From the NCBI GenBank assembly GCA_965644295.1, contig CBFFRP010000234.1:62001-126000 (forward strand): a stretch of DNA of 64,000 bases, given 5' to 3'. A model generated the notes under the pieces. The model was not told where the DNA came from. It saw only the letters and a list, made by a program, of their open reading frames with translations, and did not search any database. This document shows positions 2,136-64,000 of the stretch, piece after piece; within the stretch, counting starts at the first letter, position 1; each line of letters starts with the position of its first letter. The stretch is from Paraphysomonas bandaiensis. Taxonomy: Eukaryota > Protista > Chrysophyceae. The translations under genes were made by a program, and so were the position numbers.

Positions 2136-3405
2136 ATGTCATTGGCTCGCTCTCGTATATTTATTGTTGGCGCAAAGCGCACTCCTTTTGGTAACCTAAA
2201 TGCTGCTGCATTCTCTTGTTGTGATCAGTAACGTGCTCTGCTGTATAGGTGCTTTTGGAGGCAAACTGAAGCACTTGACGGCAACAGAACTCGCTACTCA
2301 TAGTTCTGTTGCTGCACTGGCTGAGGCAAATGTTCCTGGAGCTAAAGTTGATGAAGCTTTTTTCGGAAACGTTATTCAGAGTTCTTTGGATGCCGCCTAT
2401 TTAGCTAGACATGTTGCTCTCAAGTCTGGAGCCCCAGTCCCCTCTCCTGCATTGACTGTTAACCGACTCTGTGGAAGTGGGTTTGAAGCTGTGTGTCTAG
2501 GTGCTGAAGCCATTGAACTTAATCGTGCTAGCATTACACTCTGTGGTGGAACGGAGAACATGTCCCAGTGCCCCATGGTAATGGACGGGTTGACCGCTCG
2601 CTGGGGTGCCCCTCTGGGCAAAGGAATGAAATGTGAAGACAGCCTTTGGGCAGGATTAACTGATGCCCATGCTGGTCTCTCCATGGGTCTCACTGCTGAG
2701 AATCTTGCGGAGAAGTATGACATTTCCCGTGAGGAATGCGATGCATATGCTCTGCGCAGTCAGCAGTCTTGGGCCCGTGCTAATGAGGCTGGTGTATTTA
2801 ATGCCGAAATCGCCCCCGTGGAAATCAAAACGCGCAAGGGAGTTGAGTCTATGACTGCGGATGAGCATCCTCGCCCGTCCACTGTTCTTCCTGACCTCAT
2901 CAAGTTAAAGCCTGTCTTCAAACCTGACGGTAGAGTGACTGCTGGTTCCGCATCAGGAATATGCGATGGTGCCGCCAGTCTAGTTGTTGCCAGCGAAGAG
3001 GCATGCAAAGAGAACAATCTTGTTCCACTTAGTCGTGTGGTTGCATGGGCGCGTTCCGGATGTGACCCCTCTTGTATGGGTATCGGACCTGTACCTGCAA
3101 TTGAGTCGGTTCTTAAGGCTACTAACCTCTCGTTAGCTGACATCGAGATTGTAGAGATTAATGAAGCATTTGCGGCACAGTACTTATCTTGCGAAAAAGC
3201 ATTGGGATTGAATCGTGATGTGGTCAATGTCAACGGTGGAGCTATTGCTTTGGGACATCCTCTGGGTGCATCTGGAGCGCGTATTCTAGCCCATCTCACC
3301 CATGAGCTCCGTCGCACCGGAAAGAGATACGGTCTTGGAGCCGCTTGTATTGGTGGTGGGCAGGGAATCGCTGTACTTCTAGAGAATGCTGATGCTTCTG
3401 CTTGA
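2136..3405 (+). CDS. ACAA2: 3-ketoacyl-CoA thiolase (ACAA2-like)
   Basis: Exon 1 MSLARSRIFIVGAKRTPFG, then GT-AG intron ~2191-2248. Thiolase motifs NRLCGSG, NEAF, GGAIALGHPLGASG and CIGGGQG. Confidence 0.93.
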
Positions 3406-59128: not shown

Positions 59129-60367
59129 TCAAATTTTACTGCAAAACATTGACCCCACCACCCCAGTATTTGGTGATACTTTTCCGTCTACCAGTAGCCT
59201 CCACTGATCTTTCACCCCCTCCGGGCCGTACACATGTTGCACCTTCATCCACTCTCTCGACCCCGCTACAAATACTCCAAGAGCCTCTTTCGACCTAGAA
59301 ATAAATTCTTTAAGTCCCCAACGCTCAACACAACTCGAGAACTCCGCAGGGGCGAAAAAGAGTGTTGGTGGCGGTCCTCGTACCACAGAGGCTTCAGTGG
59401 GATTGTCATGATGGCTCTTACCAATTGACATCGAATATTTAAGGTTTTCTCCAAGGACTTCGTGTAATTTGGAAACTATATCCCAGTTTCCTGACATGTC
59501 AATGATAACAGCGCCCACATTGCCACAGAGAGAGTGAACGTTATCATAAGGAATTACACGGTCAAAATAACCTGTGGATTTGACAAAATCTACATTATTG
59601 AGAGAAGTTATTCCAATTGTCTTAATTGGAAGAGAGCCAGGGCGTCGTTGAACAGATATTCGCTGGGCTATGCCGAGGGCTGTTTTACTTGATGCAGAGA
59701 TGATGTATACCTCTTCCGCACCAAGATACTCCCCATTCTTGTGGTGTCTGAAAAACTCATCTGCTAGAAAAGATGTCAAAAACAGACCTCTCAGAAGAGC
59801 TTGTCGATCTTCGCCATCTTCTGTGTCGTCCACGTTGAAGGGGTCCACATCGGTTCTGGAAAAGTCTACGTAAACTTGTGCATGCTTCGCTCGGTGCTCA
59901 CCAACGTCGAGGAATCCACCATCGGGCTTCGCTTTGCCTGTTATTGTCACATATTTGCTCATAGGATACCATCCAAAGTATTTCTCGCCAACTGTGACAT
60001 TGGGTACCAAGGACTCGATGACAGTGGCCCACCCCATCGCCGGTACACGTCCCCACTCTAGACTGCTTTCACTGGGGAAAAAGTCCCAATACCCTAGCTT
60101 ATCGCCCGCCCATGCATACGTGACAGTGTTAGCGGTCAAAGAGAACTTATCAACCTGAAGTCTAACTTCTCCTGTTTGTACTGGATTCAAAGTACTCTCC
60201 CTCACTATTCTCGTTTCTTTGATATCTCTTTTGTTTACCTATTGCTATAGTCATCTATCGATACATATAAACTGATGCTAGTAAATTACCTCTAAAGTTA
60301 CATTCGATACAGTTCGAAGCACTCCTGTGGGGCGTGTAAAGCACGTCATCCGGGAGCACCACATCAT
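59129..60367 (-). CDS. DUF2855 family protein (MDR-like fold)
   Basis: FSLTANTVTYA, YWDFFP, GRVPAMGWA, GLFLTSF, SASSKTA and LFFAP. A short first exon MMWCSRMT...TLE is followed by one intron. Confidence 0.85.
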
Positions 60368-60910
60368 CTTTAATTATGTGGCTCGTATCGTATTGGCTAA
60401 TCACAAGCAAGCAACAGACAATTACATGCACTACGACGATATATTTTTATTTAAAGATGGATGTTCTCTGATACAGTATGGTACTTGTATCTTAGCTCTG
60501 TCGATAGATATACACAGCAGTGTGTAGAATAACTTCTTGCTGCAGAAACTCCCGCAACTGAACTGCTGGAACACCACATTACTGCAACATACAAATACAA
60601 CAGCAGCGAATGTATTTCACAGATACAGTGTGACAAATATTCCGCTGTATTCTTTGTTATACAGCGTATACTAACCCACACTGCTCTGCTCTCCCCCCGT
60701 TAATATCCGGTATTCAGATATCGTATGGTGTGTATGTTAGGTATGCGAATAAGTGAAGGATGCTGTACGTACCGCGTGTAATAAAGATTCACACCCGCTC
60801 GCTATGTAGTGTAGTTTTCTATATGTTACACACGGGTCTGGTCGAGTCGACACAGTAGAATATATATACCATCATCGTCCACTGCATCTTGCAATATTAA
60901 CATTCACAAC

Positions 60911-61734
60911 ATGCTTTACTCAACTACCTTATTTCTTGCGTTGGCGAGTGCTGTTGCGCTTCAGGTAGAATAACATTTCGTCGATGTTCTGTGTCTCGAG
61001 GCTGATGTTGTATTGTATCAGGAGGCTCCACCTGTGACGGTCGAGCTCTACTATGAGAGTCAATGACCCGGGTGCCAGAGCTTCACCACAGGCTCATTGA
61101 AAAGAGTCTTGGATGAGCCTGACATGGTTGCTATTATTGACTTAAAATTGGTGAGTTAGTGGACACGTGAGGTCCTGTGAGTCGTAGCTAACCTTTCCAA
61201 CCAGGTGGCATATGGAAACACCCAACAGAACAGAGATGGATCTTTTACCTGCCAGCATGGCGCTGGAGAATGCGAGACTGATGCCATGGAGCTATGTACT
61301 CAGTACAAGCTTTCTGGCGATATAAGCTCTATTTCCAGCGGCGACACATCACTTGCAGCTTGGCCATTCATCCTATGCATGGAAGAGGCAGATGGGTCCC
61401 CAGCAATGGGTCAGTCGTGCTATGAGAAGAACATGAATGCGACTGCTCTGCCTTGGTCTACCATTAGTGCCTGTGTCGCTGACGAGTATGAAGCGGTGCA
61501 GACTGCCGCCATGAAAGCTACTCCGAACCACGAATGTGCGTGATTTGTTAATTGTTTATCCACATTTCTAACATGGATGTAGATGTTCCATGGGTTTTGG
61601 TTGATGGCGAACTCCTTGAAAACACTAATATGCTGGAGAAGGCCATCTGCGATGCGTACACTGGTGTTCCCCCCGCAAGTTGTGGTGTGAGGTCCAATGG
61701 TGCTCTTCCTGAGGTGGAGCCCTGCTTCGCGTAG
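60911..61734 (+). CDS. GILT (gamma-interferon-inducible lysosomal thiol reductase) family selenoprotein with UxxC active site
   Basis: Exons 60911-60964, 61022-61150, 61205-61535 and 61583-61734. Signal peptide; VELYYESQ-TGA(61064-61066)-PGC; CQHGAGEC signature; YVPW. Confidence 0.9.
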
Positions 61735-61842
61735 AATTCTACGCAACGCGATAATTAAGATATTATCGTAGTATTGCTAATGAGAGTATTTGATGCGAGC
61801 AAGAAGATGTCTTAGTGGTATGTTATGTGTTGTGTTTACGCT

Positions 61843-61888
61843 GGAGGCGGAATGACGGATATTATTTAGATATCCCGATATGCTATCC
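61843..61888 (+). promoter_or_regulatory. Candidate miniature SECIS element in the GILT 3' UTR
   Basis: AUGAC/CGAU quartet with tandem G.A pairs; 7-bp helix GGAUAUU/GAUAUCC; lower helix GGAGGCG/UGCU(A)UCC. Confidence 0.55.
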
Positions 61889-62360
61889 CCGTGCTCATGG
61901 CATATATTTTGTATTTCTGAGCTCAACTTGTGAGACAAATATTCTCGTAAAGTAACGCGAATAATATATCATGATTTATATTCACAATAATGATAAGAAA
62001 TCTTCATCACTATCTTTTCCTGGTAGTGTACGATGTACGATGCTATACCATAATACATACATATCATAAATTTTATTGGAGCTCTCTACTTCGTATATCG
62101 TGTATGGTGGGAGCCAATACGAAATATTACAATATATATTTAGAGCGCATCTTGTACTCATTTATTTATTCCTCCTGAAGGGAAATCTCTTAGCTTTTAG
62201 CTCCGGCTTTTAAATAGCTACAGTAGGAAGTGGCGGTTGTGCTAACCACAGAACTTTAAGGAAACTGCTCCCGATATTCTCAGAAAACTTAATATCACTA
62301 TGTGCTATCTAATGTTGGGTTATAGATTAGAGCTACATTGCTTTGTGATGGTTTACAAGC

Positions 62361-62412
62361 TATATTGGTACAGGTTTTTAACGCCTATTGCTAAATAAAA
62401 AGACTTTCAACA
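62361..62412 (+). mobile_element. Extremely 5'-truncated (52 bp) non-LTR insertion
   Basis: Perfect 13-bp TSD atggtttacaagc (62348-62360 and 62413-62425). The insert aacgcctattgctaaataa...gactttca matches the extreme 3' end of the 39806 element. Confidence 0.82.
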
Positions 62413-63160
62413 ATGGTTTACAAGCAGCGTCTGTTTATTTATAGTTTATAGTTATGAACTTATAGACGTTGCAAAATACTGTGAGGATAAACGCATTGTA
62501 TTGCAATATATATATATTGATGTAAAGGTCCTCGTCAATACATTCAAATATATTGTTCATGAACACTGCAATATACTGAATCTTAGCTACTATTTTTAAA
62601 AAAACTATGGCAGTGGTCTTAAAAGTAATAGTGTAACAGTATATATAATATATAGGAGTATAAAAACTGGCGAAAACAGTCCGTACCATAGCAGTATTTC
62701 TACGCAGTGCGCGGATAAAGACAGCATATTTACACTTTACCATCATATACTTATCGAATCCATTTGTCTAACTCATCAAGATAAACAGTCTTATATCGTT
62801 GCTACATTAGGAAGAAAAGTGGAATATTGGTGGGAAGGTACAGCTTTAGATTGTCAATGACTTTATTAAAGTATGTACAGTATATGTGGGAGTTCTGGTG
62901 AAAGATATGATGAACAGTACATACAGTACATGTACAAGTATATCTTCAAGATATCTGGATGGACAGTGCTGGATTTTCTGGGATTTTTGTTGCAAAATAT
63001 GTGCTATTTTGATATTGCTGACGGTGAAATTTCGAATTTTGTGTGCAATTTCTCCTACATTGTCCTTGACTACGCACATAAAAATCAACCAACAGGGTCA
63101 CTGGGTGATCCATTGAACCATTGCGACAATCATTTCCGTTCTATAGCACTTGCTTCAACG

Positions 63161-64000
63161 ATGTCAGTTCTAATCTCTGCTTGCCTTGTAGCAATAGCTC
63201 TTACACTGGGATATCAATATAACCGGCATATCAATCGCATTGAAACACTATCGCGGACATATGCTCCGCTCTCCTGCCATAAAATCGGAGATCATCTGTT
63301 ACACGGACCCGAGGACATTGCATTCTCTAGAGGCAATGGTTTATTGTTTGTTTCGTCTCATAATAGACGAAATATGTCTTCCACGGGCTCACTATACACT
63401 GTCAATGTAACCTCTGAAGTAGTACGACACTTTGACATCTTATATCCTGACAACTTTAGACCTCATGGAATGGCGATAGCTCAATGTGAGAGTTTAGAAA
63501 TTTTGTTTGTTATTTCACATCGACACGAAACTAATATGATGCACACCATCGAAGTGTTCGAATATAATTTAGAACACGACTCGCTTGAACACGTCAGAAC
63601 ACTCGCCAGCAGTAAGCTAGTCAGTCCAAACGATCTCATAGCATTAGACTGTAACAGATTAATAGTGTCAAACGATCATGGTGATGGTATATTACCGCGC
63701 CTTCTTTGGGATGATGTCACCCAGTCCCGCAGGTCTGACATGGTTTACTTCGACGGAAAAGATTGGCATTTTCTGAATACTTACGCTGCTTTTGGAAATG
63801 GATTGATTTTGCACCACCAAGCTGGAAGAGATTACCTTCTCCGCTCGTCAGCTGCTGACTACTCTCTCTTAACCTACGAGATTCTGCAGTCCCAAGATGA
63901 GCATTTAACTTTGCGCTTAGTTCATGACGAAAAGTTGCCACTCTCTCCTGATAACATCGAGTTTGATGAAGTGACCGGCGGGGTAGTGATTACTGGTCAC
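63161..64000 (+). CDS. Paraoxonase/arylesterase family six-bladed beta-propeller; runs off the window
   Basis: Hydrophobic N-terminus, then HGPEDI, FRPHGM, TIEVF, SPNDL, VSNDH, FGNGL and SPDNI. Confidence 0.9.
   Translation, partial: MSVLISACLVAIALTLGYQYNRHINRIETLSRTYAPLSCHKIGDHLLHGPEDIAFSRGNGLLFVSSHNRRNMSSTGSLYTVNVTSEVVRHFDILYPDNFRPHGMAIAQCESLEILFVISHRHETNMMHTIEVFEYNLEHDSLEHVRTLASSKLVSPNDLIALDCNRLIVSNDHGDGILPRLLWDDVTQSRRSDMVYFDGKDWHFLNTYAAFGNGLILHHQAGRDYLLRSSAADYSLLTYEILQSQDEHLTLRLVHDEKLPLSPDNIEFDEVTGGVVITGH

Follow-up and report, generated by a model that had tools for sequence, protein, structure and literature searches.

A GILT-family gene with a predicted active-site selenocysteine and a small SECIS-like hairpin in its 3'UTR in Paraphysomonas bandaiensis

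At positions 61064–61066 of the window (by which we mean the whole 64,000-nt stretch of DNA that was analysed), an in-frame TGA falls within what otherwise reads as a GILT thiol reductase, where the GILT CxxC motif has its first Cys. Is this codon read as selenocysteine (Sec), and if so, what would direct the recoding? We found that the gene is real and expressed. Judging from the sequence and its relatives, the locus very probably encodes a secretory or endolysosomal GILT thiol reductase with Sec at U33-P-G-C36, inserted at the UGA and directed by a small SECIS-like hairpin in the 3'UTR.

To establish the gene model, we read the window from 60300 to 62600 and translated it piecewise. The locus has four exons, with a coding span of 60911–61734 on the forward strand and an ATG at 60911. 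A 5'UTR occupies 60835–60910; the longest transcript contig, L009, begins at 60835 and its first ATG is the one at 60911. Exon 1 (60911–60964) encodes MLYSTTLFLALASAVALQ, a hydrophobic N-terminus of 18 residues that is also found in orthologues and is a probable signal peptide. Intron 1 (60965–61021, 57 nt, GT..AG) is followed by exon 2 (61022–61150), which encodes EAPPVTVELYYESQ-TGA-PGCQSFTT... and thereby the UxxC active site, with the TGA as the predicted Sec codon for residue 33. Intron 2 (61151–61204, 54 nt, GT..AG) separates this from exon 3 (61205–61535), which encodes the GILT domain (Pfam PF03227) with the CQHGAGEC signature and carries CQHGAGECETDAMELC. After intron 3 (61536–61582, 47 nt, GT..AG), exon 4 (61583–61734) completes the Y of YVPW (HE-Y-VPWV) and ends in a TAG stop at 61732–61734. 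The 3'UTR runs from 61735 to the poly(A) site; L009 has its poly(A) run at approximately 62019 and other RNA contigs end between 61984 and 62006. The joint across intron 1 is present in L009 and in RNA contigs of X10, X11 and X12, and RNA contigs also give the joints across introns 2 and 3. A sequence-only reading of this DNA had proposed the same coding span and intron 1 as a canonical GT-AG intron, and those coordinates were right, but it had not spelled out introns 2 and 3.

The spliced product is 221 residues long, and the TGA is its codon 33. By itself, exon 3 matches PF03227 in a Pfam profile search (42 bits, E 1.3e-10, cut-off 22.4), and the genomic match reaches 53.4 bits. The signature of the family is CQHGxxECxxNxxxxC, with N as the animal consensus, together with a C-terminal YVPW block. 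In CQHGAGECETDAMELC there is a D where the animal consensus has N. The redox motif of GILT is present with Sec in the place of the first Cys (YYESQ-U-PG-C), and the C-terminal block reads HEYVPWV after splicing. The frame had been proposed to continue intact through the CQHG signature and YVPW; it does so, with CQHGAGEC in exon 3, and YVPW appears only once intron 3 is spliced out. The upstream neighbour is a DUF2855 gene (59132–60238) on the opposite strand, so the spacer of about 600 nt between them (60239–60834) would be a divergent promoter region common to DUF2855 and GILT.

When we used exon 3 as a query in a word-index protein search, we found 85 relatives, most of them of about 170 aa. 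The best relative (P0001) is 99% identical and is encoded on five transcript contigs. L009, a poly(A)-ended transcript of 1024 nt, comes from MMETSP1103, labelled taxid 36769 Paraphysomonas (chrysophyte). It corresponds to the window from 60835 to approximately 62019 minus the three introns, with the TGA kept, and differs from the spliced model at 3 positions in 666 nt of coding sequence, all outside the TGA. Three runs, among them a poly(A) marine metatranscriptome, gave RNA contigs that have exactly the three GT..AG joints and leave 61064–61066 unchanged, and a DNA contig of a second sample shows no differences over 60835–61672, TGA included. The TGA is thus carried by an independent DNA sample and by at least seven transcript assemblies; this evidence consists of assembled contigs, in which rare variants may escape. 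Neither the transcript contigs nor the second-sample DNA contig has TGC or TGT at this position, and the RNA contigs and L009 confirm both the codon and the junctions, which are the outcomes that the sequence-only reading had named as checks on an assembly error and on its splicing. In the second DNA sample (X3), some short contigs of low depth have deletions of 1–2 nt around a run of C at 61669–61694 in exon 4. We read these as probable assembly noise or allelic bubbles, since the RNA contigs are without such deletions.

If the TGA specifies an amino acid, it should be conserved together with the codons around it. The TGA sits at the same alignment column in all 13 orthologues that we inspected at the DNA level, on transcript or genomic contigs (56–77% protein identity), in a context of a probable signal peptide followed by AP(P/N)VxVELYYE(S/A)Q-TGA-P(G/S)CQSFTT. 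We compared the orthologues with the window by the Nei-Gojobori method and found that synonymous differences are saturated around the TGA (pS 0.65–1.0), while pN is 0.03–0.49 in the 14 codons upstream and 0.16–0.34 downstream, with dN/dS of approximately 0.08–0.18 where it could be computed. The low pN on both sides indicates that both sides are translated in one frame and are under purifying selection. Relaxed selection on the downstream codons had been named as the mark of a pseudogene; what we see is strong purifying selection on either side of the codon.

The residue that the column calls for can be read from the Cys forms. Aligning the homologues, as had been proposed, places the TGA opposite the Cys that opens the CPxC motif. 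This holds for P0092, P0098 and P0100, which are full-length homologues (YYEALCPxC), for an orthologue with 69% identity (L030, FESLCPYC) and for a paralogue of the same genome (L027, contig C196; YFEALCPGCQEF). When P0092 is aligned to the solved GILT structure 6NWX, its CPGC lies opposite the active-site CGAC. The paralogue locus lies at G000:C196:50321–53593 on the minus strand, with its GILT match at C196:51821–52093; two or more introns interrupt it, its N-terminus is extended by a Cys-rich stretch resembling that of database protein P0104, and it has no match to the SECIS-like model (R1) described below. Among the Sec forms, one metatranscriptome orthologue (L034:188–892) has about 60 additional Cys-rich residues at its C-terminus, which the other orthologues lack. 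Two close Sec-GILT relatives with 69–71% identity (P0011 and P0013) come from transcriptomes whose labels name the ciliate Mesodinium pulex and Durinskia, a dinoflagellate that houses a diatom endosymbiont; these sequences may derive from prey, endosymbiont or contaminants rather than from the named hosts.

We next looked for the Sec machinery and found a single tRNA-Sec gene (L001; G000:C339:26360–26445, minus strand) with anticodon TCA. It passes the cut-off of Rfam RF01852 with 69.6 bits, and ARAGORN calls it tRNA-SeC(TCA). SepSecS is found on contig C182 (426 bits) and SelD/SPS2-like exons on contig C428. For eEFSec, the candidate is a multi-exon GTPase gene (L059; G000:C287:91500–94600, minus strand, with the gene at approximately 92.7–94.1 kb), for which selB ranks first among NCBIfam families in three of the five exon pieces and second or third in the remaining two. 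We rejected the two best single-ORF candidates from TIGR00475, which are TypA/BipA and IF-2, as well as the C265 candidate, which is EF-Tu. PSTK gave one weak exon match (34.6 bits), with its candidate gene on contig C141. The genome also has two GPx genes with a catalytic-site TGA (ENIASL-TGA-GTT), L045 (G000:C145:93384–93725, plus strand) and L047 (G000:C77:46011–46394, minus strand), and further GPx matches with a TGA on contigs C41, C352 and C335. The search for Sec machinery that had been recommended therefore returned tRNA-Sec, SepSecS, SelD-like exons, an eEFSec candidate and other Sec genes; the PSTK part of it gave only that weak match.

To identify what would direct recoding, we compared the 3'UTRs of the gene and its orthologues, counted pairings and built a covariance model. 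This identified a SECIS-like kink-turn hairpin of 56 nt at 61838–61893 on the forward strand. Helix I pairs 61843–61849 with 61881–61888, and the core sets a 5' A-UGA-C (61852–61856) opposite a 3' C-GA-U (61876–61879). Helix II has 7 bp, formed by GGAUAUU (61857–61863) and GAUAUCC (61869–61875), and is closed by the loop AUUUA. The layout of a SECIS is thus recovered: helix I, internal loop, 5' A-UGA-N opposite 3' N-GA-N, helix II and loop. Orthologue 3'UTRs have the same hairpin core, GGAAUGACGG...YGAU, and so do the regions that follow Sec-GPx genes in this genome. In 3'UTRs of GILT genes that are otherwise unalignable, the decamer GGAATGAC(G/A)G is present in 10 of 15, and the core in the form GGAAUGAC(G/A)G...YGAU is shared by 3'UTRs of GILT orthologues and the downstream regions of two Sec-GPx genes. 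The GPx genes L045 and L047 have a SECIS-like hairpin with a GGA(A)UGACGG core approximately 350–550 nt downstream. In each case, GILT and GPx, the motif is followed by a complementary arm ending in YGA(U/C). One Sec orthologue (L028) has the 5' GGAAUGACGG motif, and a clean 3' GA partner was not found there.

To quantify the pairing, we used an alignment of nine sequences. Pairs form in 75.6% of cells as compared to 58% in shuffles (0 of 500 reach the observed value) and 32–54% with slid partners, and 8 of 10 pairs have changed on both sides; the pairing structure was derived from the same sequences on which these pairs were counted. The covariance model R1 was built from this alignment. In the 64-kb window, its only match at E < 1 is 61838–61893 (35.9 bits), which is itself a training member, and the next, on the opposite strand at 61954–62019, has E = 2.2. 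At loci that were not in training, all seven matches at E ≤ 1 are on the coding strand, approximately 50–400 nt downstream of the coding sequence of a Sec-family gene, although each is weak on its own (E 0.07–0.6). Besides GILT orthologues L031, L036/L037 and L038, these loci comprise two more GPx genes and one gene of the Rdx family. With filters off, R1 gave weak matches in the 3'UTRs of Sec forms L032, L034 and L029 and none at the Cys-form loci L027, L041, L062 and L063; at L030 there was wrong-strand noise only. Across the genome, R1 was scored on 150 of 7809 candidates, and within this subset it matched the two GPx elements used in training.

Standard models see none of this. With cmscan, Rfam gave no SECIS at E ≤ 10 in 60000–64000 or in seven orthologue transcripts, only snoRNA and miRNA noise, and Rfam SECIS_1 (RF00031) had 0 matches at E ≤ 1 across the 62.6-Mb genome. 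Because this genome has Sec genes, we read the blank for RF00031 as insensitivity rather than as absence of SECIS elements, and standard SECIS models appear to be blind to the elements of this lineage. Two ad hoc scans of the 3'UTR for a canonical SECIS by pattern (AUGA, 8–14 nt, AA, then GA) gave nothing convincing, and an AUGAG at 61780 was rejected as a SECIS core since it has no matching 3' GA or helix.

The small hairpin is the oddest, and less expected, feature of the gene. One reading is that 61838–61893 is a functional SECIS despite a helix II of 7 bp, a loop of 5 nt and the lack of an AAR motif, which would mean that the machinery needs only the kink-turn core, without a fixed spacing to an apical motif. 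We regard the case for this as evenly balanced. It draws on the L038 element, which is smaller still (a 5-bp helix and a 5-nt GAAAA loop), and on the variable length of helix II in other elements, where it ranges from about 8 to more than 15 bp with 29–64 nt between the core halves. If true, the hairpin would represent a minimal form of the eukaryotic SECIS, which would account for the failure of standard models to find any in this genome.

How else could the TGA be explained? One alternative is that UGA terminates translation and that the product, if any, starts from a downstream Met (MVAIIDLKL..., 169 aa) and is without the probable signal peptide and the active site. The complete public calls of this family that we inspected do start at that Met, and the SECIS candidate is non-canonical. 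However, the 14 in-frame codons upstream of the TGA are under purifying selection (pN 0.03–0.12 against pS 0.65–0.86 in the closest relatives), every orthologue keeps the probable signal peptide and APPVxVELYYESQ, and no function is evident for a GILT protein that has neither CxxC nor a signal peptide, so we consider termination very unlikely. We find it similarly hard to credit that a near-cognate tRNA (Cys, Trp or Arg), and not Sec-tRNA, decodes the UGA. Sequence alone does not reveal the inserted residue, and a SECIS this small might be inefficient. Yet the codon takes the place of the catalytic Cys in a CxxC of the thioredoxin fold, a classic Sec site. The genome has Sec machinery as well as further Sec genes that share the 3' element, and all 13 orthologues keep TGA although a single mutation would give TGC or TGT, as in the Cys paralogues.

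The other two explanations we regard as refuted. That the codon is an assembly or sequencing error or the mark of a recent pseudogene has a negligible chance of being right, given its presence in an independent DNA sample and at least seven transcript assemblies and its conservation in orthologues with dN/dS of approximately 0.08–0.18. A genome-wide reassignment of TGA, for example to Cys or Trp, is contradicted by its use as a stop: the thiolase ORF (2200–3405) stops at TGA 6 residues past the end of the Thiolase_C profile, and the DUF2855 ORF (59132–60238, minus strand) stops at TGA at the end of its profile. These ends bear out the claim of the sequence-only reading that TGA is an ordinary stop in the window. 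In addition, the 535-codon frame of SepSecS has zero TGA, and the GPx matches have exactly one TGA each, in ENIASL-TGA-GTT at the Sec site. There is next to no likelihood of reassignment on these data.

Taken together, these data support the original proposal of a GILT reductase encoded as a selenoprotein: the TGA is kept, homologues have Cys at its column, Sec machinery is present and selection acts on both sides, while the SECIS-like element is non-canonical. In the selenoprotein reading, the organism's own Sec machinery would read the UGA as Sec, with the kink-turn SECIS-like hairpin, approximately 690 nt downstream in the 3'UTR, directing the recoding. By analogy with GILT, the selenolate of U33 would attack a substrate disulfide and C36 would resolve the mixed selenenylsulfide. 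The hydrophobic N-terminus suggests secretory or endolysosomal routing. As the organism label points to a phagotroph, a likely role would be to unfold disulfide-bonded prey proteins in acidic food vacuoles. The pKa of Sec is near 5, so the nucleophile would stay ionised in an acidic vacuole.

With this locus, a predicted family gains a culturable source organism and a complete, transcript-verified gene, and the Cys paralogue in the same genome is a natural comparator that makes the enzyme testable. The question that this raises is whether Sec favours disulfide reduction at acidic pH. The locus also bears on annotation. The 85 short-form relatives in the database all have their start inside the first exons or beyond them, the 13 that we inspected at the DNA level carry the TGA, and those inspected with a complete shortened call start at the Met after the TGA; public gene calls thus cut the Sec-GILT protein short. 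The Rfam SECIS model overlooks this genome's SECIS elements, so counts of selenoproteins in protists of this kind are likely to be too low.

In comparison with known systems, the hairpin resembles a canonical SECIS in its 3'UTR site, helix I, internal loop, 5' AUGA opposite a 3' GA tandem (the kink-turn core), helix II and apical loop. Human SECIS elements need AUGA/GA together with an apical AAR (or CC), and a helix 2 of 14–15 bp sets the spacing between the two (PMC2761289), and the consensus core is UGAN/KGAW (PMC3753652). In contrast, helix II here has 7 bp instead of 14–15 bp, there is no AAR or CC, the 3' core is CGAU rather than KGAW, and the element falls below Rfam reporting thresholds. 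The protein shares with mammalian GILT/IFI30 (6NWX) the PF03227 domain, an N-terminal signal peptide (probable here), YYE-x-x-C/U-x-x-C, CQHGxxEC, the C-terminal YVPW and conserved cysteines; unlike the mammalian enzyme, it has Sec and not Cys at the attacking position, and sequence identity is low. Sec-GILT was reported as a new selenoprotein family of eukaryotes on the basis of three reads from Global Ocean Sampling, whose source organism was not known and one of which had a predicted SECIS (Zhang and Gladyshev, 2008; PMC2398784). Jiang et al. (2020; PMC7539508) list GILT with the algal Sec families of narrowest distribution, and the main text of that paper names no chrysophyte. The remark in the sequence-only reading that Sec-GILT had already been predicted was therefore correct, and the literature library that we searched gave no paper linking Paraphysomonas with selenoproteins. 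Like the 2008 Sec-GILT, the present one is a eukaryotic GILT homologue with Sec for the first Cys of CxxC and a 3'UTR SECIS (SECIS-like here), and it is a well-documented addition to a known family that is still without biochemical characterisation. Unlike the environmental reads of 2008, it is a complete four-exon gene with Paraphysomonas-labelled transcripts and many orthologues, in an assembled genome that also has a Cys paralogue.
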